64,000 nt of DNA, taken from the NCBI GenBank assembly GCA_037447605.1, contig CM074810.1, positions 3,878,880-3,942,879 on the forward strand. Reading direction: 5' to 3'. The stretch comes from Zygnema circumcarinatum SAG 698-1b (taxonomy: Eukaryota > Plantae > Zygnematophyceae). A program made the translations under genes and the position numbers. A model generated the notes under the pieces. That model was not told the origin of the DNA, searched no databases, and saw only the letters and a program-made list of their open reading frames with translations. Of this stretch, positions 13,065 to 60,811 are shown one piece after another (positions within the stretch are counted from its first letter, which is position 1; every line of letters starts with the position of its first letter).

Positions 13065-15318
13065 TCATCCGAGCGAGGCCATGTCCCTCGAGACCCAAGC
13101 GCTGGAGGCGAAGTCGGCCGATATCTGCACGCGCAGCGTCTCGTGCACCGTCCCCCGCTCGAGGAGGGCCCACAACCCCAGCGCGGGGCCCTCCCCCTCC
13201 CCCTCCCCCTCCCCCGCCTCCGCGATGGCCCTCAGCGGCGCCACCGCCACGCGCAGGTCGTCGCGGAGGCGCGCCCCTCCGCCCCTCTGAAGGCCGCCGA
13301 GGGCCCACCGCCGCACGCACACGCTGCGCTCCGCCACCCCGCGCTCCGCCACCGCCGCCGCCAGGACCGCGCCCTGCCCGCCCCGGGGACCACCCCCGAG
13401 AGAGAGAGTGACACACACACAACAAGAGACACAGAGAGCGAGAGAGAGAGCGCAGGGTGAGAGACGGGTCAAAGCTTGAGGGAGAGGGAGAGGGAGAGGG
13501 AGAGGGAGGGGGGAGGGGGAGGGGGAGGGGGGAGGGGGAGGGGGAGGGGGAGGGGGGAGGGGGAGGGGGAGGGGGAGGGGGGGGAGGGGGAGGGGGAGGG
13601 GGAGGGGAGGGGAGGGGGGAGGGGGAGGGGGAGGGGGAGGGGGAGGGGGAGGGGGAGGGGGAGGGGGAGGGGGAGGGGGAGGGGGAGGGGGAGGGGGAGG
13701 GGAGGGGGGAGGGGGAGGGGGAGGGGGAGGGGGAGGGGGAGGGGGAGGGGGAGGGGGAGAGGGAGAGGGAGTGGGAGGGAAGCTTGTCGGTATTCTACCT
13801 CCACACGAAGGTGACGAGCCGCATAATGCAGGGCGAGAAGGTTGAGCAAAACGCTGCGCTTCCGACAGAGGAGAGTCTCGACGACGTCCTCGAGGCCCAG
13901 GGCGAGGTTCCGGAGAAGCGCCATGGCCCGCTGGTAGTCGCGCACCTCCACGGAGTCGGCCTGAGCGGAGTCCGCGATCACCTCCGCCACAGCCTCCGCC
14001 CGCCTCCGCACTTCCGCTCGCCGCACCACGTAGGCATCGCGGCCACGGGGCTGCGGCACACCGCAACGCAGGAAGAGGGGGCGGAGGAGGATGATGCAAA
14101 TGGACGAAGGGCAGCAGAGAGGGGAGAAGATCACAAAGAGCAATATGATCAGACAGACGTCAGGAGCATTTCACGGACCCTGGGAATGAAATGTGAGGAT
14201 TTCACGTTCCAAAATTAGATAAGTCAGAACGGAGGAAAATAGTCGCAGGTATTGCGCGTAATTCTTAACCTCGTCGGAAAAGTTAAGGTGGCGCAGGCAC
14301 TTGCGAACTTTCAACGAAAACTGAACACCCCCTCTCTTCATTCAACTGTAGGGACCGCTCCCTTCTACAAAACTAGCGACATTGCTCGAGAGCGTTCGTA
14401 GCTCTCAAAAGTAGCACGAACATCTGGCTAAACAAAACATTTACATTTCTTCAGATCAGGCTTCTTTCAGAAGGACAGGCCTAATCCTCGGAACACATCC
14501 TTGCTCACCTCCGTCGGCCTCGCTTCTTCTCTCTCACACTCCTCTCCCTCCCTCGCTTCCCTTTGGCATAACCGTCGTTGAAACTCTACTGCACGAAAGA
14601 TATCACAGCTGTCTCTCATCATGTCCTTCGCCCCCTCACCCGGAACCCACATCCTCTTGTTGTTTGAAGCAAGCAGCACAGCAACGATTCCAACCTTCCA
14701 TACAATCGTTTCTCCACTTCTCTCGTGATACCTAAGTTTACAGCCACACTAATGAGCAATAATATATTCACACTCTTAATCGTTTTCTCCTCCTCCTCCG
14801 GAAAAGGAAACCCACCCAACCATCGTCGCTGACAAAGCCTTCTCAGGATATTGAAAAGTAAGTACGGAGTCCAAGCAGCGCCACACTCTCTGAGCTTACT
14901 CCACACACAGTCGATAGCATCAGCCATTCCTCACCTTCACGCCTGCAGCGTTCTTTTCTTCTCCTCCCTCTCCTTCTCCTGTCTGACCTCCTCCACCTCC
15001 ATTTTCAATTCTCTTACTTACCCCCCCTACCACTCCCGCCGACTCGCCTGCAGCAGCATCTAGTCCACGCTCTCCTCCCACAACGCCATGGCCTCCATTT
15101 CCCTGAGGATAAACCCTAAAAGCTGCCCCCTCTGCACGGGAGCCGTCTCCAGGATCCTTCACGGGCCACCTCCGGAGGTAGAGCTGCTCCCACAGCAGGT
15201 TGTCAGAGCACGCGCGGCGAAAGAAGCGGCAGGACGCTGCCAGGCAGCACACGCCGCGGGGCCCCAGGAGAAGCGCCACCGCCATGGCGACCTCCTCTGG
15301 GAGCGAGGTCAGATCCAT
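13065..15318 (-). CDS. Plant-type F-box protein (multi-exon)
   Basis: N-terminal F-box LTSLPEEVAMAVALLLGPRGVCCLAASCRFFRRACSDNLLWEQLYLRRWP. Downstream exons RAEAVAEVIADSAQADSVEVRDYQRAM...SVLLNLLALHY and ERSVCVRRWALG...LERGTVHETLRVQIS match a conserved uncharacterised plant F-box family as I recall it. Internal exon boundaries are uncertain. Confidence 0.8.
13476..13775. repeat. (GAGGGG)n G-rich microsatellite in an F-box gene intron
   Basis: About 300 bp of GAGGGG/GAGGG units; this repeat produces the spurious poly-Pro, GE and RG ORFs. Confidence 0.95.
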
Positions 15319-16022
15319 GGTGGACGGACGGCTGGGAGCACAACAGGGCGATGTTCATGCACCCTTTAGGACACGTGGTCATGATGTCACACAACGTCAT
15401 GGTACGTCACGCCCCGTCAGCAGCGCCATATTCCAGTTTTTTCATAGAAACGCACTTGAGTTTGTCCGTACAAAGCGGTCGCACCCTTCGTCCCGTGAGT
15501 TTCCGCAGGAGCGTTCCAAAATGTCGTACGGTAATTTTGATGTGTTTTTGGCCGACTTTGAAACGTTAAAGAAGGCGGCGGAGGTCGACCTAGAGCACGG
15601 CGGATCGCAGTCAGGAGACTCAGGACACGACCGGCCGCGGGCCGCGGGAGAGCAGCGACAAATTCTTGCGGTGGCCCCGCAGCCAATCGCGGGACGTCTA
15701 CAGATCGCAGTGACGCGGAAGTGGACCCATTCGTACGCCGAATCCGCCTGGCCTCGGGCGGGCAGGAAGGTCTATCGGCCGTCAGCGCGATCTCCGGCCG
15801 CCCGCCGCCACTCTGCTCAAGATTTGACAATTTGTCGTTTTAAGGGCAGATCTACCCAGAATACGATACCTCGTGACGCACTTGATGTTATATGACGTCA
15901 CGTAGGCTAGCTCCTGCCAGGAACCGTACGGTCCAGCCTGCCCGCCGGCCCCTGCATGAAAGGGAGTGAGGGAGGGCGGGAGGGAGCGAGGGAGGGGAGG
16001 GAGGGAGGGAGGGCGGGAGGGG

Positions 16023-16032
16023 NNNNNNNNNN
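16023..16032. other. Assembly gap (10 N) inside a G-rich repeat
   Basis: Run of N. Confidence 1.
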
Positions 16033-16114
16033 GAGGGAGGGAGGGAGGGAGGGAGGGGAGGGGAGGTGAGGGGAGGTAGGGGAGGGAGGTGTGAAAGATG
16101 ATGATGCTGCGGGT

Positions 16115-16191: not shown

Positions 16192-16529
16192 GCGAAAGAG
16201 AGACTGCGCGTGTGAGAGAGTTCAGGAAGGTCTGTGCAGGAAGAGAAGTGTCAGGCGGAGGAGAAGCGTCAGGCGAAGCGTCAGGCGAAGCGTCGCAAAT
16301 GTATGGTGCTCAGGAAGGAGGATTCAGAAAGGAGAATTCTGGAAGCTTAGACATTGGGTAGAAAAAGAAGCGCTGCGCAGATTTAGAACACAGGAAGAGA
16401 GAAGAGAGGATGAAGTGATTTGTAATGAGGCTTCAGATGAAATAAAGAAGTGTTTATGAGTTATGTGTTGATCTTGTGTGATCATGTGTTTTGTGCATCA
16501 AGCTTGAATGTGTTCTCTTCTTTCACAGG

Positions 16530-17070
16530 AGGGAGGGGAGGGGAGGGGAGGGAGGGAGGTATGGGAGGAGAGGTGAGGGGAGGGATGGGAGGAAGGGAGG
16601 GAGGGAGGGAGGGAGGGAGGGGAGGGATGGAGGGGAGGAAGGGAGGGAGGGAGGGGTGGAAGGGGTGGGGAGGGGAGTGGAGGGAGGGGAGGGGAGGGAG
16701 GGAGGGAGAGAGAGGGAGGGAGGGGAGGGGAGGGAGGGAGGGAGGGAGGGGAGGGGAGGGACGGGGAGGGGGGAGGGGAGGGACAGGAGGGAGGGGAGAG
16801 CGGGGAGGGAATTAGGGAGGGAGGGGAGGGAGGGGAGGGAGGGGAGGGAGGAGGGAGGGGAGGGAGGGGAGGGAGGGAGGGAGGGAGGGAGGGGAGGGAG
16901 GGGAGGGGAGTGGAGGGAGGGAGGGGAGGGGAGGTGAGTGGAGGGAGGGAGGGAGGGAGGGAGGGGAGGTGAGTGGAGGGAGGAGGGAGGGAGGGAGGGG
17001 AGGGAGGGGAGGGAGGGAGGGGAGGGGAGGGAGGGGAGGGGAGGGAGAGAGGGGTGGGAGGGAGGGAGGT
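16530..17070. repeat. GGGA/GGAGG-rich low-complexity tract
   Basis: About 540 bp made almost entirely of G and A on the + strand. Confidence 0.95.
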
Positions 17071-17659: not shown

Positions 17660-20415
17660 TCACGACTTCCGAAACAATATTTCAAGGCGATGCTCATGGC
17701 CGTTGTAAACTTCGAGCACTTGCACTCCCTTCACCTCTGCATGGACGGAAGGCTCAGAACGATCAGCTTGAACCCAAACTGCAATCTAGCAAGAAGTCAT
17801 GACGTGTTATGCCAATGTTGTGTTTTTAGGGAGGGACGGAGGAATGGTGGGAGGGAGGGAGGGTGGGGGGGAGAGAGGGCGGAAGGGAGATGAGAGGAAG
17901 GAAGGCAGGCAGTGAGTGAGGAGACGGGCGACGAGGAGATGATTCTATTTAGGGGTTGCGGGTACGAGAGAGAGAGACGAGAATGAGGGAAGGGGGATAT
18001 GTAGAGGGTAGAAAGGTGCGCCGTGATTGTCTGCGAGTGTCTGCGCCCTTGCAAGCGAGAGAGCGTGAGAGCGAGAGGTCACCTAAAGGCAGCATGCGCG
18101 CCCCTGCAGTAGTGAGCAGCGGCAGGCCCTCCCCCACTTCCTCCCACACCTTCATCCGCTCGGCCACCGCCATTAAGAGCTCTCCTACCGTCTTCGATCT
18201 CCTCCCTCGGCGACGTCCTTTCGTACTTCGCGGGCACTCCGCCGAGGAGGAAGGGAGCGCCGACCGGAAGGTGCTCGCTATGGGAATGGTCTTCGCGCTT
18301 AAAAGAGGCACCACCACAGGGAGCCGCGCCATGGTTTTGCTGCGTCTCGTCACGGGGGGGAAGATGGGTTCACAAGATCCTTCAAACGCGCGATGTGCAA
18401 TTACGTCCCTTTCATCGTTACTCGTACTCTCAGCAGAAAGCAAGCTCTGGGCTTTCGCATATGACGTTTCCAGATACGAGTCCGCGTTTGCACTCGATGT
18501 CGGAGGTTCGTCACAGGTCACGTCGATAGTCAAATGAGTTCTTAATTTCCGAATGCCCCCCCCTGCTGCTTCTTGTGCTGGCGGCAGGTCCGGAGAGTGG
18601 GTGAGCTCTGGGCCATCCTCCTCAAGTTGCTGCTGCAACCATGGATGTTCTGCGGAAGCAAAGACGAACAGACACCACAGGTTCTACGTGAAGCTCATGT
18701 TGCGTGATGGACCTGATTAGCTCTGCGAGTAAAGTGCGAGCTCGTGGAGGCGACAAGCAAACCCTAAAAAACCCTAAACCCCCCCCCCGCTCACCCTGCG
18801 CCTCCTCGGCGGTGATGCGCATGGCGGGGTCGAAGCAGAGCATGCGGCGCACGAGGTCCTTGGCCTCGTCGGACACGTGGCGCCACGGGCCGGTGGCGAG
18901 GTCGAAGACGCCCGCGCGCACCTTCTTGAGCGTCCCCTCCTCCGTTTTGGCGGCGAAGGGCGGCGTCCCCGACAGCAGCACGTACAGGATCACGCCGAGG
19001 CTCCACATGTCGGCCTCGGGGCCGTACGATTTGTTCAGCACCTCGGGGGCAATGTAGTACCTGCAGGCGCGCTGTTGCGATATGGTGAGCATTCTCCCCC
19101 CCGTTCTATGTCGTTTTGACGTTTCCCAGTGTCCTTCTCTACTTTGTTGGCGGGCAGCCACTCAAACTTTCGAAAGCTGTTTTTCGTTTTCATCCAGAAC
19201 CCGGCGATGAAGGGGTTCAGTAACGCCCCGCTTTGATTATGCGCCTACATGTCTCCCTGGACCCACGCAAGAGGGCGCAGAGTGTTGCGGATCGGCTCAC
19301 AGCGTGCCGACGGTCTGCGTGAGTTTGACGCCGGGCGTGAAGAAGGCCGCCTGCCCGAAGTCGACGACCTTCACACGTGTGGCCGAGTCCGCCGATTCGA
19401 GGAGGATGTTCTCGGGCTTGAGGTCGCGGTGCGCGATGCCCGCCGCGTGGCAGTACACGACAACGGAGAGCACTGTGCGCACCACCGCCGCCGCCTCGCG
19501 CTCGCCGTACGGCCCGCTCTGCCGGATGCTGTCGAAGAGGTCGCCGCCCTCGCACAGCTCCATGATGATGTGCACGCTCTGAAGGAGAGGGGAGGGACGG
19601 GGTGAGAACTAGAGGGATAGGGAGGGAGGGAGGGAAGGAGAGGGGAAGGTAAAGAAAATACGAGGGGGTAGGAAAATGGTACGGTGAGTGAAGGAGACGG
19701 GGAATGATAGGAGTATAAGAGATGGGAGCATACACATTGTGAGGAGGTGGGCAGAGAGGGGCAGTAGAGAGAGCGAGACCTTCTCGTCCTCCACGACGTC
19801 GCGGAGAGCAGCCACACCCTTGTGTGCGCTGGCCTTGCGCAGCGCCCGCACCTCCGTCCTGACGGCGGCCGTCTCGGTGTGCGACGCCATGCGGCTCTTC
19901 GGCAGCGTCTTGCATGCCAGCAACTCCCCGCCTGCCAGCGCCCGGCAGGCACGCGTGACGGCCGTGAGGCCCTGCCCGAGCTCCTCGCCCATCTCGTACT
20001 TCTCCTCCACGTCGCTGTAGGGGATCCCCAGCACGTACGTCGCCGACTTCTGCGACCCCGCCCGGCGCAGGGGGTGGGCCGACGCGGGGGACGGGCAGGG
20101 CGCGCCGCCTCGCGGCAGAGGGAGGGGCGACGGCGCGCCCGACGGCGAGAACGGGCGGGGCGAGGGGAGCCGGGGGAGCGCGCCGCCGCGTTCGCCGCGG
20201 GGCGACTGGGCGTGCGCCGGCGCCTGCGCGTCTATGGCGATCAAATGCGACACCATGTCCGGAATCACGCGGGGGGCCGAGGGGGCGGGGCGGGGCGAAG
20301 GGAGCCGGTCGAATGCGCCGCCGCGCTCGCCGCGGGAGGAGAGGGCGTGCGTCTGCGCATGCGACTCTATAGCGATGAGGTGCGACACCATGTCCGGAAC
20401 CGCGCGCGGGCCCAT
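17660..20415 (-). CDS. CDPK/CAMK-group Ser/Thr kinase lacking EF-hands, with a non-canonical C-terminal domain
   Basis: Motifs YEMGEELGQG, LLACKTLPK, HIIMELCEGGDLFD, HRDLKPENILL, DFGQ, VGTL|YYIAPEVL, DMWSLGVILYVLLSGTPPF and EHPWL. No junction or EF-hand region follows. The last exon is inferred at 17736-17660 via a phase-1 GT-AG intron (18082-17737). Confidence 0.9.
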
Positions 20416-21264
20416 GGGGGCCGGGAGGGGAGGGGAGGGGAGGGAAGAGGGAGGGGGGGAAGTGGGAGGGGAGGGGAGGGGAGGGGGAGGGGAGGGAAGT
20501 GGGAGGGGAGGGGAAGGGAGGGGAGGGGAGAGGAGGGGAATAAGAGGAAGAGGGAGTGGGAGAGGGAGCGGAACGGAGGGGGGAGGGAGGGAGCCCGCGG
20601 CTGGCTCGCTTGCTGTGCGAGGGGCGGCCGGCGGGCGGAGGGAGGGAGGGAGGGACTGCGCCCGCGCGCCCGCACGCGCGGGCGACCGAGAACGTCTCCC
20701 CCGGGCGCCGGGCGGCTGTACGGACGCGGCCCCGGCCGTTACGGCGCCCGCGCGAGTTCGCAAATGGTCACGGTGCTCGTACGGAGGTTTGTACGAATGT
20801 CCTTACACGCCGTCGCCGACAGGGACTGGGAGCGCCTGGCGGCGGGCGGCGAAAGGGACAGGGTGGCCGTACGGCGCGGCCCCGCCGACTGGCGGCGTCA
20901 GCGTGAGGTCGCAAAACGTCAAAACTGGAACCGAGTGAGCTTGTCGGGCGCGCTGCGACCCCCCTAAAGCGACAAAAATTGAAGATGGCGGCCGGCTTGA
21001 CGTCAAGGGATTCGGAGGGTGGATTTTGTCAGATTCGGAGGACACGCCCGGCGGACCCGCAAACGACAAAACTGAGACCTGCCATGAGGGCGGGCGGCTG
21101 AGATGGCCGCGACGTTCACAAAACGACAAAATGATTTGTGACAAGCCCCTTTACAGCGCGGGCGGCCCAGCGTTAGGCGGAACCGCCGCGCCCCATGCGG
21201 GCGGCAATTTTGGCGGTTAGCGGTGTCGGGTAAGCGAGGGGGCGATAGGGTAGGGAGTAGGGAC

Positions 21265-21968: not shown

Positions 21969-24900
21969 TCACAAGAAAGTTGCCGAATAATTTTCCCTCT
22001 CGCCTCTCCCTCCCGGTGTCCTCGTACCCTCTCCTATCGTCCCGCCTCCTCCTTCCTTCCTATGCCGCCCCTCTCTTCGCCGCCTCTGACGATTACTCTT
22101 CTCATTTGAGCCGCTTTCTCTATCGGACCTGCGAACTCGACCAGACCTCCCGCTCCTCTGCTTGCCTGCAGCTCCATATTGCCCCCCCGAGCCCTCCCCT
22201 GCCCCCCCCCCCCCATTCCGCTCTGCCCCCCCCTCTCCATCGCCGACAAAAGCAGGGTTTTCTCCCGCAGGAAACCCTTCGGCATCATCACGTCGTCGCT
22301 CAACCACTGCCTCCTCTTCCTCCCCCTCCTCCACCTCCCTCCGCTTTGCCAGCTTCCCGCCGCTACGCCCTGCACTCCCCCAAGAAGAGGTAGCCTCCTT
22401 CAGTCTGCTCCCCAACGACCCCTCTCGCGCCTTGTCCCCGCCGCCATCCCTCCCACCGCGCCCTCTTGCTGCAGGGAGGTAGAAAGGGTCGTGCTTCGCC
22501 CTGTGTTCGGCAAGCAGCGCAGAGGCAGAAAGAGCAGCGGAAGCACTGTTCTCCTCCTCCTCCTCCTCCTCCTCCTCCTTCTTCTTCTTCTTCTTCTTCT
22601 TCAGCAGCTCTCCACCGTCTCCCACCTCCCCCTCTGTGCTGCTCCATGGCTCGTTGGCAGCCCCACTCCCCCCCTCTCGTCTTGGGCGGCCAATTCTCTG
22701 CAGCTCTTCCAAAGCGCCCTCTAGATGAAGGCCCTCCGGGACGGGCACCCGCTGCTGGGCTCCTGCTTGAAGCGGTCTCAGCTCTTTTGAGAAGACTTGC
22801 CGCAGAGCCAATGCAATGGATGGCACTTTCTCTCTCTCGGCCACTACCTCCATCAGAGCGAGCACGTTGCAGACTCGTTCCTGAGCCTCCATATGCCCAC
22901 TTTCTGCTAACCCTTGGACATGATTACCGACAAGCTTGGCCATGGCTTCTAGACTCCCTCTGTCTGCATGGGTCACTGCCGGCCCATTATCCTGCAGAAC
23001 TTTTTGGGGATGTCGATACTCACAACCGGAGCTGCCGCTTGTGCCCACTTCTTGCTGATCTACAACATCACCATGTCTCCCAACCTCTTCCGAGAAAACT
23101 GAACCCTTTGCGGAACCTTCGTCCCTACTTCCCCTGCTTCCACTTTCACTACTGACCACTACCTTCGAAGTAGCCACGGCCGTAATGAACACCTTCAAAA
23201 CTGCTTGCACATACATGGCCTGCACAGACGGCCCAAGGAGCTTCACCTTCGGCTGCAGCAGCGCTTCGAGGGCCGCCATGGAGTCTTCTACGTGTGCCGC
23301 ATATTCCCCTACCACCCACGCAGCTGCTCCGAGGGGGAGGTCCATGGCGGAATGCCCCCCCCTCCCCACCAGCAGGGGACCCTCCTGCAGCAGCCGCAGA
23401 GCCGTACGGACAGCGGCCGCTCTCACTGTTGCCACTCTCACGGGGAGGTCAACGAGCTGCCTCGCGACCTCCCGGCCATGGCTGCTTCCCGGCACGCACG
23501 CCAAGTGGACGAGCACATCGAGATACCATCCGAAGTCGCTCACTCGCTCGTAGCGGCCATGGCTGCACATGGAGAGGACAGCCTTCACGAGCTCATCTGT
23601 GAAAGGGCTGCTTCCGGCCTGCATGTGCTGCTGGAGGACAGTGACAGTAGGGACGAGGTTTTCCGGAGAAATCATCTCCAATACCAAATGCAAAGCGCAG
23701 CGCTGAATGCCCTGATCTTTGTCATCTAGACAAGAGAGGATGGAGCCCTTGTGTTCAGATATTGCAGCAGGATGCGTTTCCACAAGAGTCAACATGGTCC
23801 TGAGGCTTAAGTAACGCAGGTTTGGGTCCATGTCATCCACGAGCTCCCCCAGTTTGAGAATGCAGTAAGCCATGCCTGCCTCATGCTGGGACATACTCTC
23901 TGTGACGCAGCGAATACACTCAAAGAGAAGGGACTTTGCGGGAGTGTTCCGCATAATGTCGCAGAGGGGATCGCCCAATTTCTGCGCAAGGCGGGGCTCA
24001 AGAGGAGCCAAAGCTCGGAAAATCTTCACAAGCTTAATAAGCAGCCAGTTGTTGGAAGAGGTTGTTAGCAGGCGATAAAACTCAGGTGCGAGGTGGAGAT
24101 AAGATTTCGGATCTCGCAGTGTGAGTTCGCAAAGCACAGTCACTGCAATCCGCACCACCCCATCGTCCTCATCCTCGAGCCGTTCAGTGAGTCGGCGGAA
24201 GACCATTCGCAGCCCATCTGGGTGTTGGCGGACCATTCTTAAGAGAGCTAAAGCAGCTTTCCGCCGCATGTATGGGCGGCCGCTGTTCAGAGTGGTGAAT
24301 ACTTCAGGTGTTAACTCGCGTGCCAAATCGGGAGTGGCAATGCAAGCAAGGCAGTTTAAGGCTAATCCGGCTTCGTACATGACAGGGCTGCCCAAATCTT
24401 TCCGCAACAAATTGGGAAGGAGAAGGAGTACTTCAGTTTCGTTGTTGAAGCTCTGACATGCAGCCAGATAGCCAATTTGCTTATTGCTGAAGATGGGTGT
24501 GCTCATCGCTTCCACAGTGGCAAAAGCGGCCCAAGTCATGTCTGCTCCTTGCAGCATGTGCAGATATGTCAGCTTCTGAAGAGCGACTATCTTGCAATGC
24601 AGGTCCATTGACTTCATCTCCCTTCTCACATCAGCAAGCGCCTGCGCCAAGTACTGTTGTTCACCAATGACCTGCAAAAGCCGGCTATTAGTGAAGAGTT
24701 GACAAAGCTTGTGGCCAATGCGAGGGTGCATTGAAGGGGGTGTGAAAGGCAAGCATGAAAGGGAAGGCGAAGTCGAAGGATTGAAGTCGATTGTGATAAA
24801 CATTCGATCGCGCCTACGATAAGGTTGCGGTGACAATCGAGTTGAAGGTTGTCATGCTGTGATGGAAGTTAAGGTGAAGGTAGGGAGAAGGTTCAAGGTT

Positions 24901-26040: not shown

Positions 26041-26122
26041 TCACTCTGAGGGAGAGGGTGAGGGAGTGGGAGAGGGAGGGAGAGGGAGAGGGAGAGGGAG
26101 CGGGAGAGAGGGAGAGGCCGCC

Positions 26123-47908: not shown

Positions 47909-47992
47909 GTCTGTCTATCTGTCTATCTGTCTGTCTATCTGTCTGTCTGCCTGTCTGTCTGTCTGTCTGTCTATCTGTCTGTCTGTCTGTCT
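47909..47992. repeat. (CTGT/CTAT)n microsatellite
   Basis: Direct reading of tetranucleotide repeats. Confidence 0.95.
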
Positions 47993-48032
47993 GGTTCGAA
48001 TCATGGTCCCTTCCCCTCGCGTGCCCTCCGCC

Positions 48033-50875
48033 TCAGAGAGCGAGCGTGGATCGCAGCATGAGTGCGTGGTAGGAAGACTTCCCGCTTGCAGCCATCACTA
48101 TTCCCGGCTGCAAGCTGAGGCCCCTTCCGCAACGCAGCCGCACAAACCCCTCCATCTGCAAGGGTGGCGAGGCGCCCGAGTGGCTCCCTGCATATCCTTG
48201 TGAGAACGCTTCAGGCAGTCCGGAGCCCAGACTGAGCCCCCAGCCCACTGCCCCTCGCCCCTTGGTGGGTGTATGGGCGAGCGAGAGCGCCCACAGCATG
48301 CGGTGCCGCTCGTCCTCCGCGAGCCAGTCCGCCTGGTCCGCCTGCGCCCACGCGGCCAGGGTGGTGCTGGGACCCAGCCCCAGGGCGCCGGAGACGGATA
48401 GCGACTGCAGGGCCATTCCGATAGAAGGGCGTGGAGGCTCCCACAGCGCAGACTCGCTTAGAGGGGGGCTCGCGTTGGTGGCTGCTGGCCTGCTCCCCTT
48501 ACTTTCACCTAGGAACTGCTTTGGCCGCCACTGCAGCTTCGGCAGAACCAGAGGACCCATTTCACTCCAGTGCAGCCCCCCGCTGGAGGGCGCGGGCGGG
48601 GCCGGCCACATGCGGTTCAGCACGGAGAAGGAGAGCAGCAGGCGATCGTGCGGCTGCAGGGCGATCTGGGCCAGAGTGGCTGCACAGAGCCCGCTGTCGT
48701 CGGAATCGGGCAGAATGCGCGGGAGCGGTTGAACTGACGCGCCCCAACCACTGAGGAACTGAGCGCATGTGAGAGTGGCGATGCTGCCTTTCAGAGAAAC
48801 GCCAACTGCTGATCCCTTGGCATTGCCGTGAAGGGGCGCTCCTTCGCTAGCAAAGCGTGTCAGTGCCCGCCCCTGATACAAAAAGGAAAAGCATCAATCA
48901 GACCGAGCAAGGATGCCACCTTTTCAAAACCCCCTGCCCAAGATCATCTACTCCGATGGAAGGTACACAGGTATTGAGAACCTTATAGCAGTCAGGTTTC
49001 CTATAAATCGTACCAGCTACATCTCCCTCCCCCACCCCCCATCCTTTTCCTCCTCCCCACCATTTCCTTCATTATGACGGATGTTTTAGTCAGCATTACC
49101 CCCACTGACGTTGAAGTAACAAGAAAAAATTGTATAGAACGCTGCCTAGAATGGGAATATGGCGACAATATAATATATATATTATATTATATATATAATA
49201 TTCGTTCTTTCTGAGCGAAGAGTAGAGCACCTGTAGAGGATTAAGTGTTTCCGCCATGTCCCAACCATGCGCCCCCAAGGGCGCAAACCGTAGTAGCAGC
49301 CCCGGCTGAATGTGCGCTGTGTAGAGCACCTTATGCAGGGTGATCGGGCCTCCAAGCATGATGGGACTGGTGGCTTCACCCAACCCTGCCGTGCATTCGG
49401 TCAACAGCACATCAGCTTCGCGGCATGGGGTTTCAAACCGGAACTTCACTCCCAAACCGGACCTCATGCCTGCTCTCTCCAGAAGAGTTCGCGCCTCCTG
49501 GCTCTGCTCTTCTTCCGCAGGAAGGAATGCAGCGCCGGCATTCACCTCCCCTGTAAGGCGTGTCCGCACTCCGCCCCCTTCTGAGGCTGCAGACGGCCCT
49601 GAACCCAGGCGCCTCAGCCCTGTATGAAGTTCCAATTTATCGACACGTTCCCGCACATTCAGCAAATCTGAGAATGCCTCTCGAACGAGGCGCCGAAGAG
49701 CGCTCACCTGAACCCCCCAAGAAACAGGGAATTTCTTAAGACTTGTTCTCATTAATTTTGCCTCATATGCTCATTTACATGCATTGGCAAGTTCCCAGGA
49801 CACTGGGAACGTACAAATGCTGTGAAAGAGTATGCTTGACCAGCAATAATAAACGGAGTAATAAGGCCGGCCAAATCAGAATTCAACCCTTTCAGTGCAT
49901 GCATCAAACACATTTGCCAAGCCACAGCTCAGATCATACAGAGAGTGACTCCTCTCTTCCCACCTCTGAACGGCGCGCGAACGCCTGCTCATTCGGGCGA
50001 CGGTCGAGCAACTGTATGGCGAGGAGAGCCACCTCGTCAATAAGATTTTGGCGTTCCAACTGTGCGTCCACTTCCTTTTTCTTCTCAGGTGTCATAGCAG
50101 CAGTGTTCCCACGCCGCTGCCCTGTAATGGCGTACATCATCCCTGCCAAAGCGCCAAGAACGTGGTCCACCGGCAGCTTCCTGGGATCGTCACCTGCGTC
50201 ATTTCTGCTTGACCCGAACTCCATTTCTCGTTCGAATGTAGAAGAAGGAGACGCGTCACCCTCGACTTCCTCCTCATTCTTCCCCCCTTCAAGACTCCTT
50301 GCCTTCATGACTGACCTCCCCTTCGGCGACATTGACGCGCTGCCGGGAAAGTCGACAGTCACAGTCGGTACACTTTCGTCCGGTGCTTCCCCTTCCTTTT
50401 CATTTTCACCCTTTGCTATCAGCGCCTTCTCTCTCCCTCCGCCCTCCTGCCCTCCACCCCCTCCGCTGCTGCCTCCCCAATCATTTCCACCGTCGCCAGA
50501 CCCGCCGCCATTTTTCCCATCTCCACCAGTAGCTCCGCCTCCCTCTCCTTTCCCTCCTCCCGCTGAATCTCCATCGAGACTGCTCCCGGATTTGGAAGGA
50601 GTCGATTTTGAGGTTTTCGACCCCTTTGAGGGCGGCGAGCCCCCTTTACGGTTCGCCCGAGGAGCTCTCGGTCTGCGGCTGCCGCCTTCAGCGAGATCTG
50701 CTGTCACCAAGGCGCGGTGGCGAGAGGCGGCACTGCCTCGGCGGCCATGGATGCAAGGGAGCTGGAGCTTGAAACCATCGTTAGGGTTAGGGCTATTGGA
50801 GTTTGGATTGTGAACAGCCTGCTGCAGCGGAAGGGACGAGAGCCATCGCTGCTGAAATGAAGAATACAGCGCCAT
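48033..50875 (-). CDS. Putative plastid-envelope beta-barrel protein related to cyanobacterial SLH/OprB (SomA-type) porins, 3 exons, about 740 aa
   Basis: Exons 50875-49964, 49707-49231 and 48872-48033 join in phase 0 at canonical GT-AG sites. The protein has a transit-peptide-like N-terminus, a poly-Gly segment, a coiled coil LRRLVREAFSDLLNVRERVDKLE, then RTRLTGEV, and C-terminal alternating strands LQMEGFVRLRCGRGLSLQPGIV...LMLRSTLAL*. The gene model is solid; the family assignment is inference. Confidence 0.8.
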
Positions 50876-60571: not shown

Positions 60572-60811
60572 AAAGGGCCACAAGGGCCACAAAGAGGCCA
60601 CAAGAGGCCACAAGGGCCACAAAGAGGCCACAAGGGCCTGAGGCCACAAGGGCCTGAGGCCACAAAGAGGCCACAAGGCCTAAAGAGGCCACAAAGAGGC
60701 CACAAGGGCCTGAGGCCACAAGGGCCTGAGGCCACAAGGGCCTGAGGCCACAAGAGGCCACAAGGGCCTGAGGCCACAAGAGGCCACAAGGGCCACAAAG
60801 AGGCCACAAAG
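60572..60811. repeat. Minisatellite of AAG(A/G)GGCCAC and AAGGGCCTGAGGCCAC units
   Basis: Mixed 9-16 bp units next to the gap; the true length is unknown. Confidence 0.9.

Follow-up and report, generated by a model that had tools for sequence, protein, structure and literature searches.

A minus-strand locus in a 64,000-nucleotide stretch of DNA from Zygnema circumcarinatum SAG 698-1b (the window) raises the question of whether a nuclear gene of a green-lineage alga encodes a relative of the main outer-membrane porins of cyanobacteria, and whether such a protein may be a leftover channel of the chloroplast's bacterial ancestor. A sequence-only reading had proposed that the locus resembles cyanobacterial SomA/OprB porins and might specify an uncharacterized plastid envelope channel. 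Our analysis supports the homology; plastid outer-envelope location and channel activity are inferences.

Gene Structure and Family

The peptides that prompted the proposal are present on the minus strand: LRRLVREAFSDLLNVRERVDKLELHT and RTRLTGEVNAG lie in one open reading frame, and LQMEGFVRLRCGRGLSLQPGIV and LMLRSTLAL* lie in a second; these are exons 2 and 3 of a gene encoding 742 amino acids (Table 1). The sequence-only reading covered these two exons only; a first exon adds 304 residues. The splice sites are canonical GT-AG and phase 0, with a GT donor directly after 49964. A 2845-nt contig from a related species (L081, from Logan SRR8128905) carries an uninterrupted open reading frame for a 743-aa protein (P0123), which is colinear with the window protein across the first junction (between RRSE and VSAL). 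The contig aligns to the window in three abutting blocks (50102-49962, 49709-49231, and 48862 to 32 bases past 48000), confirming both introns.

Table 1. Coordinates of the gene and its features in the window
Feature	Coordinates	Strand	Description	Alignment to L081
Gene	48033-50875	-	Three exons, 742 aa	
Exon 1	49964-50875	-	912 nt, 304 codons, ATG at 50875-50873; transit-peptide-like N-terminus, Gly-rich tract, two conserved helices, and first residues of the coiled coil	3' part, 1004-1144
Transit-peptide-like start	50696-50875	-	First 60 residues; start MA, 9 Ser/Thr, 6 Arg/Lys, only 2 acidic residues	
Gly-rich tract	50441-50560	-	Residues 106-145; 24 Gly in 40, with interspersed Asp/Glu/Asn	
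Intron 1	49708-49963	-	256 nt, GT...AG	
Exon 2	49231-49707	-	159 codons; coiled-coil helix and roughly the first five barrel strands	1141-1619
Exon-2 part of N-terminal amphipathic helix	49612-49707	-	VSALRRLVREAFSDLLNVRERVDKLELHT; hydrophobic residues in 3-4-3-4 heptad spacing	
Intron 2	48873-49230	-	358 nt, GT...AG, with an AT-rich microsatellite	
Exon 3	48033-48872	-	279 codons plus TGA at 48033-48035; roughly barrel strands 6-16, one long disordered loop, and C-terminal strand ...ALMLRSTLAL	1630-2457
Region encoding predicted 16-stranded beta-barrel	48036-49557	-	Residues about 355-742, interrupted by intron 2	

The protein belongs to a Viridiplantae-wide family. We found 302 land-plant relatives, and a phmmer search with exon 2 found 81 relatives, the best 95% identical; a land-plant member (P0003) is found directly with exon 3. 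Named members cover Aquilegia, Paspalum, Ginkgo, Welwitschia, Adiantum, Selaginella, Riccia, Chara, Mesotaenium, Closterium, Chlorokybus, and the chlorophyte Myrmecia; the nearest named relatives are the zygnematophytes Mesotaenium and Closterium. Weak phmmer hits of 415-595 aa carry no SLH or OprB domain and are divergent algal members rather than cyanobacterial porins. The sequence-only reading had also noted a resemblance to an uncharacterized land-plant family, and this family exists: an October 2026 preprint calls the angiosperm members BUL16, "Barrel of Unknown Localization 16" (Proctor, Montezano, Copeland, Slusky; bioRxiv 10.64898/2026.07.15.738633). No Arabidopsis ortholog or proteomics evidence was found; the only Brassicaceae entry (Thlaspi, P0038) clusters at 90% identity with Brazil nut on a 53-kb contig and is probably contamination.

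Predicted Fold and Relationship to Cyanobacterial Porins

AlphaFold2 was applied to residues 292-743 of P0123 as a proxy; the exon-2-encoded part of this protein is 95% identical to the window, and the protein is about 80% identical to the window protein over residues 229-742. The model has one long helix (residues 5-44 of the domain, pLDDT 83-89) and 16 strands (mean pLDDT 79.6, pTM 0.72), so that the predicted fold is a transmembrane barrel, not a soluble or helical fold. The top 50 Foldseek hits in PDB are all outer-membrane beta-barrel porins or channels, almost all 16-stranded, plus one engineered protein of porin size (E 3e-8 to 1e-6; TM on the target 0.44 to 0.65); they include the SLH/coiled-coil porin OmpM1, the coiled-coil porin DcaP, and OprB (4gey).

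Direct family scans were largely silent. Pfam OprB (PF04966) does not match the window exons at any E up to 10 and matches one of 40 relatives, at E 0.036; no other Pfam model matches. A profile of the family searched against PDB sequences returned only chance hits to influenza polymerase (E about 1.7). The NCBIfam cyanobacterial "iron uptake porin" model (NF033921, por_somb) gives only 9 bits with exon 2 alone, on the helix, but with near-full-length domains it is hit by 36 of 40 members; the best E is 1.7e-12, and the proxy scores 24 bits (E 1.3e-5). These scores are significant for homology, although they fall far below the model's 100-bit cut-off (the best member scanned individually, P0172, reaches 39 bits). 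The matches are colinear, with the helix on profile positions 62-120 and the barrel on 163-462 of 485.

Searched against 5.8e9 proteins, the family profile returns one hit outside the family (P0216), which carries Pfam SLH and OprB domains (E 2.8e-5); profile-profile alignment (hhalign) of the family with this protein gives 97.6% probability. Alignment with 76 cyanobacterial porins gives 99.3% (E 1.8e-20) over 375 columns, running to the last residue of both, and addition of six further cyanobacterial orders raises this to 99.7% (E 2.8e-25). The barrel alone gives 98.5% (E 3.7e-15), and the helix alone gives E 2.8e-6 against the coiled-coil linker of the porins. The window's own protein is barely seen by a narrow Nostocales-only profile (7.5 bits; 39.6%), but gives 95.0% (E 3.7e-8) with the broader set. 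The cyanobacterial consensus given in the sequence-only reading was accurate; porins retrieved here carry TTTRLTGEV after the coiled coil and end in YVGTLRTTF.F.

The resemblance might in principle reflect convergence or an artifact of beta-barrel composition and periodicity, as pairwise identity is only about 20% and the Pfam OprB and PDB sequence searches are negative. This is very improbable: reversed sequences, which keep composition and strand periodicity, score E about 0.1 (probability below 1%), and column-shuffled controls score E 0.16-0.66. The alignment is end to end and colinear, with matching motifs in the helix, the first strand, and the last two strands; in addition, each of the four other NCBIfam families reported is hit by a single member, and none of those is a porin family.

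Inferred Origin, Location, and Role

The explanation that we favor, with moderate confidence, is that the locus is an intact, spliced nuclear gene encoding a precursor whose C-terminal 440 residues form the predicted helix and barrel, and that this module descends from the SLH-coiled coil-OprB porins that dominate the cyanobacterial outer membrane. The most economical history is transfer from the plastid ancestor to the nucleus, followed by loss of the Sec signal peptide and of the peptidoglycan-binding SLH domain and gain of a eukaryotic N-terminal extension. An OprB-type porin is one of only three outer-membrane proteins conserved across cyanobacteria, with Omp85 and LptD (PMC4365693); Omp85 has well-known plastid descendants (Toc75 and OEP80), and plastids carry barrels named after or compared with LptD (LPTD1 and TGD4). 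In the literature searched, no paper links an OprB porin to a plant or algal nuclear gene.

Horizontal transfer from a non-cyanobacterial bacterium into an early green-lineage ancestor is an unlikely alternative, although no red-algal or glaucophyte member was identified among the named hits. In the absence of a rooted tree with non-cyanobacterial OprB proteins, a cyanobacterial donor rests on the shared coiled coil next to the barrel and on the specific match to the cyanobacterial subfamily model, the only bacterial family model matched, while the general Pfam OprB model is almost silent. All tblastn relatives of the bacterial hit on plasmids are cyanobacterial.

The N-terminal 300 residues are low-complexity and diverge even from the closest relative. 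By composition alone, the start resembles a chloroplast transit peptide and not a signal peptide; the same pattern appears in P0123, P0124, P0125, P0172, P0208, P0210, and P0151. A comparable Gly-rich tract (18-26 Gly per 40 aa) occurs in about 12 of the 19 other long-form relatives listed, with weaker ones (10-15 Gly) in the rest; it resembles the polyglycine envelope-sorting part of the Toc75 presequence (PMC5147994). In algae, the liverwort, and the fern, the extension looks like a Toc75-type bipartite presequence, whereas seed plants have only a short N-terminus. It is inferred that the precursor engages the chloroplast import apparatus, that the glycine tract stops it at the envelope, and that the barrel is then inserted into the outer envelope from the intermembrane space, probably as a trimer held by the coiled coil, as in bacterial coiled-coil porins. 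There it would serve as a narrow channel for small inorganic solutes such as metal ions, and possibly also as a structural tether; the substrate is an analogy with annotations that are themselves mostly inferred.

The same barrel could instead work in another membrane, such as the mitochondrial outer membrane, or be dually targeted. The authors of the BUL16 preprint could not assign it to the chloroplast, angiosperm members lack any presequence, and one database entry is named "acyl carrier protein 2, mitochondrial-like", although this looks like an annotation accident. We consider this unlikely given the cyanobacterial ancestry, a family seen only in Viridiplantae, and the presequence plan of the long forms; BUL16 also passed the preprint's mitochondrial filters, and many plastid outer-envelope barrels appear to lack presequences.

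A mainly structural role, in which the coiled coil and extension link the outer envelope to the inner envelope or to plastid peptidoglycan, is also doubtful. The coiled coil is the best conserved segment (nearly invariant L, R, L, R, E, F), and cyanobacterial SLH/OprB proteins are proposed to stabilize the outer membrane through the wall (PMC8707739). Long forms keep two conserved helices upstream of the coiled coil (..DWLAGL.. and ..AL.AE.A..L..L), in the order and spacing of the two SLH helices, including a shared Asp-Trp. However, no Pfam SLH hit was found in exon 1, hhalign of the upstream region against the SLH part gives 0.2%, a relaxed alignment lays the helices on the SLH helices but adds no score, and the AlphaFold2 model of the fragment is of low confidence (pTM 0.35). 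Seed-plant members lack the extension yet keep the whole barrel under conservation, which argues that the barrel itself is functional; the two roles are not exclusive. An SLH remnant is unsupported. It survives only in a speculative and improbable reading, which adds to the survival of the OprB-type porin across Viridiplantae as this family that the long forms of algae, liverworts, lycophytes, and ferns also keep a degenerate two-helix remnant of the wall anchor, tying the outer envelope to plastid peptidoglycan, that was shed in seed plants.

Plastid outer-envelope channels are poorly understood, and the characterized solute pores seem to have no accepted cyanobacterial ancestors. If this family sits in the envelope, it gives a concrete candidate for ion or metal passage across the outer envelope, a step that apparently lacks a known channel, and it would offer a second natural example of Toc75-style bipartite sorting.

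Comparison with Known Systems

The cyanobacterial SLH-coiled coil-OprB porins (SomA/SomB of Synechococcus, Slr1841/Slr1908 of Synechocystis; PF00395 plus PF04966) align colinearly with the family through the coiled-coil linker, the first strand motif (T.L.GEV), and the whole barrel down to the C-terminal strand pair (..E.....G....L.PG........RS.W.L against ..E..YR....NI..TPG........RTTF.F). The window gene differs in being nuclear, with spliceosomal introns and a eukaryotic N-terminal extension, and in having no Sec signal peptide and no detectable SLH domain; scores fall below both curated family cut-offs, and the terminal residue is usually Leu, not Phe.

BUL16 is the same protein family, with a 16-stranded barrel and a variable, low-confidence N-terminus; its representative, PIA58738.1 (P0100), aligns full length with the proxy at 29% identity. 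The preprint reports BUL16 as restricted to Magnoliopsida and absent from Chlorophyta, and its main text does not contain the words cyanobacteria, OprB, or SomA. Here the family extends to gymnosperms, a fern, a lycophyte, a liverwort, streptophyte algae, and a chlorophyte, and it is linked to cyanobacterial porins, which gives this recently named orphan family an ancestry, a much wider taxonomic range, and testable hypotheses; the window's member is a long form with about 300 extra N-terminal residues.

OmpM1 of Veillonella parvula (8byt/8bys) and DcaP of Acinetobacter baumannii (6eus) are among the best Foldseek matches (E 3e-8 to 1e-7, TM up to 0.64 on the target); each is a 16-stranded barrel, probably preceded by a coiled-coil stalk that forms a trimer. 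There is no detectable sequence relationship, and OmpM1 carries an SLH domain, which is absent here.

The characterized plastid outer-envelope barrels (Toc75/OEP80, OEP21, OEP24, OEP37, OEP40, and TGD4/LPTD1) are separate: the COB classification of the preprint keeps BUL16 apart from all of them, and no Omp85/POTRA or other Pfam domain is found. They share with the window protein the proposed compartment and the general role of beta-barrel pores, and the presequence plan, a transit-peptide-like start followed by a Gly-rich tract, recalls Toc75.

Gene structure and genomic context

The sequence-only reading had proposed a nuclear gene resembling the SomA/OprB porins of cyanobacteria, a candidate plastid envelope channel, and the peptides on which it was based lie in two minus-strand ORF pieces (exons 2 and 3). 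Inspection of the minus strand reveals canonical GT...AG boundaries in phase 0, together with a third, upstream coding block that starts with an ATG (exon 1); the three exons joined together encode a protein of 742 aa. The observation is thus confirmed.

The gene model is confirmed independently. A phmmer search with exon 2 identified P0123, a 743-aa protein whose matching stretch is 95 % identical to exon 2 and which is colinear across both junctions. Its only source is a 2845-nt Logan contig (SRR8128905) with an uninterrupted ORF. This contig aligns to the window in three abutting blocks, separated in the window by 256 and 358 nt, with DNA identity of 68-77 % in the blocks and protein identity of 80 % over residues 229-742, indicating a different species whose coding sequence has stayed conserved. 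The neighborhood is eukaryotic (for example, an adaptin N-terminal-region ORF), and the gene is not bacterial contamination.

Features of the porin-like gene and its surroundings in the window
Feature	Coordinates	Strand	Remarks
Exon 1	49964-50875	-	Upstream coding block; starts with ATG
Two conserved helices upstream of the coiled coil	about 49976-50149	-	Residues about 243-300 of the protein
Exon 2	49231-49707	-	ORF piece
Exon 3	48033-48872	-	ORF piece
AT-rich (TA/TATAA) microsatellite	49150-49200		Inside intron 2
(GTCT)n microsatellite	47909-47993		21 copies; about 40 nt downstream of the stop codon, probably in the 3' UTR or flank
Adaptin N-terminal-region ORF	21972-24836	-	955 codons, uninterrupted; E 2e-96; AP-complex large subunit; notable for having no intron over 2.9 kb
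ORF with partial protein-kinase domain match	19612-20763	-	E 1.9e-6, below Pfam's threshold; overlaps the 135-bp tandem repeat
135-bp tandem repeat	20152-20430
Long G-rich GGGAGG / GGAG-type arrays	13480-13779, 15961-16089, 16528-17069, 20423-20562, 26048-26117		The 16-18 kb one explains the GC-skew peak of 0.52
Compound tandem array	60572-60809		GGCCACAA-type units; periods of 10, 16, 26, 72 and 88

Family membership and homology to cyanobacterial porins

Neither Pfam nor NCBIfam recognizes the exons at a significant level. Exon 3 retrieves a land-plant hypothetical protein, which in turn retrieves 302 mostly "uncharacterized" plant proteins of about 360-430 aa with no Pfam domain. Named members span the green lineage, including angiosperms (among them the monocot Paspalum and the holoparasite Orobanche), the gymnosperms Ginkgo and Welwitschia, the fern Adiantum, the lycophyte Selaginella, the liverwort Riccia, the streptophyte algae Chara, Mesotaenium, Closterium, and Chlorokybus, and the chlorophyte Myrmecia bisecta. 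The window protein is closest to P0123, an unnamed transcript, then to a EukProt transcriptome protein, and then to Mesotaenium and Closterium. Two family members are named "Bacterial surface antigen (D15) domain-containing protein" in UniRef; the precomputed Pfam column is empty for both, and no Omp85 (D15) match appeared in a scan of 40 other members; the name is probably an automatic mislabel. The only Brassicaceae member seen (CAH2050335.1, "Thlaspi arvense") sits on a 53-kb contig and clusters at 90 % identity with a Bertholletia excelsa protein, and is probably contamination. If the family is absent from Arabidopsis, this might explain why it is uncharacterized.

An October 2026 preprint (10.64898/2026.07.15.738633) describes a cluster called BUL16, "Barrel of Unknown Localization 16," whose representative PIA58738.1 is exactly one of the proteins in our alignment. 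The preprint separates BUL16 from OEP21/24/37/40, OEP80, TOC75, TOC159, and TGD4, and states that its localization cannot be assigned; its main text does not contain the words cyanobacteria, OprB, or SomA. BUL16 is reported there as restricted to Magnoliopsida and absent from Chlorophyta; the members found here in Riccia, Ginkgo, Adiantum, Selaginella, Welwitschia, Myrmecia, and Chlorokybus contradict that.

Forty diverse members were aligned from the helix to the C-terminus (alignment A1), and five lines of evidence agree on a relationship to cyanobacterial porins. When each member was scanned individually against NCBIfam, 36 of the 40 hit NF033921 ("por_somb, iron uptake porin"), with a best E of 1.7e-12 and an E of 1.3e-5 for the proxy of the window protein (P0123), whereas each of the four other families reported is hit by a single member. 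The matched stretches are colinear, with the N-terminal helix on profile positions 62-120 and barrel segments on 163-462 of 485. A search of 5.8 billion proteins with the A1 profile returned family members plus one outsider, P0216, a 506-aa protein carrying Pfam SLH and OprB (E 2.8e-5 for the whole database) that is 70 % identical to a Chroococcidiopsis gene; hhalign of A1 against P0216 gives 97.6 %. We then translated 76 full-length porins from 80 cyanobacterial loci. Profile against profile gives 99.3 %, E 1.8e-20, over 375 columns, in an alignment that runs from just before the coiled coil to the last residue of both families and leaves the SLH part of the template (positions 1-136) uncovered; the barrel alone gives 98.5 %, E 3.7e-15, and the helix alone 88 %, E 2.8e-6. 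Finally, the addition of six porins from other cyanobacterial orders, taken from plasmid records annotated "iron uptake porin" or "carbohydrate-selective porin OprB," raises the value to 99.7 %, E 2.8e-25, and the window's own spliced protein alone then reaches 95.0 %, E 3.7e-8, over 398 columns.

There are weak points: Pfam OprB is almost silent, the NCBIfam scores lie far under the 100-bit membership cut-off, and a search of PDB sequences found nothing. The controls are clean. Column-shuffled templates give E 0.16-0.66, and reversed sequences, which keep composition and strand periodicity, give E about 0.1 and probability below 1 %. Chance resemblance is effectively excluded; a non-cyanobacterial donor is not.

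Predicted fold and N-terminal extension

AlphaFold2 was run on P0123:292-743 with A1 as the alignment (mean pLDDT 79.6, pTM 0.72). The predicted structure has a helix at residues 5-44 followed by 16 strands, with one long disordered loop at residues 270-318. In a Foldseek search against PDB, the 50 best matches (of at least 500 counted, 254 with E at or below 0.001) are all outer-membrane beta-barrel porins or channels, almost all 16-stranded, plus one engineered protein of porin size, with E values from 3e-8 to 1e-6. They include OmpC/OmpF, VhChiP, PorB, and Rhodobacter porin, as well as the SLH/coiled-coil porin OmpM1, the coiled-coil porin DcaP, and OprB (4gey) at rank 26. The interpretation of the sequence-only reading is supported for homology and fold, but remains open for location and function.

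The first 300 residues have no domain hit and diverge quickly between species, but a plan still recurs across long forms. The long forms start with MA or similar, in a stretch rich in Ser/Thr and basic residues and poor in acidic ones; this is followed by a tract with 10-26 Gly per 40 residues (at least 18 in about 12 of the 19 other long forms listed, and 24 in the window protein), usually between residues 60 and 230, and then by two conserved helices (..DWLAGL.. and ..AL.AE.A..L..L) and the coiled coil. The first two elements mirror the presequence of Toc75, in which an import signal is followed by an envelope-sorting part whose polyglycine acts as a rejection signal for further transport (PMC5147994). 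This evidence on location is indirect and rests on resemblance alone, and residence in a different membrane is not excluded. The two helices look like the two helices of an SLH motif in order and spacing, including a shared Asp-Trp, but hhalign gives no support for this, and an AF2 model of the fragment is uninformative.

Inferred function and comparison with known systems

Cyanobacterial SLH/OprB proteins are the major outer-membrane proteins; their SLH domain binds the wall and their OprB domain forms the pore (PMC8707739), and mutants point to roles in salt, copper, and iron passage (PMC9705863; 10.1101/2021.01.14.426630). Two of the six "iron uptake porin" genes from cyanobacterial plasmids sit beside ion-transport genes (a P-type cation ATPase and a nitrate ABC transporter at one locus, a potassium channel at the other), which fits an inorganic-ion role but is only anecdotal. 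By descent, the plant and algal protein is most likely a narrow trimeric channel for small inorganic solutes in the plastid outer envelope, with the coiled coil projecting into the intermembrane space, although every step beyond a homologous 16-stranded barrel with a coiled coil is inference, and a mainly structural role is not excluded.

In full-text searches, which mostly did not cover subscription journals, no paper was found that links OprB, SomA, or Slr1841 with the chloroplast, plastid, outer envelope, or Arabidopsis; earlier mention elsewhere cannot be excluded. The family is of high interest for chloroplast envelope biology, tempered by the preprint that already flagged the angiosperm barrels and by the absence of any localization evidence. 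In terms of the three outer-membrane barrels considered by Simm et al., it would be the plastid-era descendant of the third, the OprB-type porin. The protein is homologous to SomA/SomB-type porins and is inferred to work like them, but it fails three of their defining features (SLH domain, signal peptide, and curated score cut-offs). It should therefore be described as a derived eukaryotic offshoot and not as a member of that bacterial subfamily; it is a member of BUL16.
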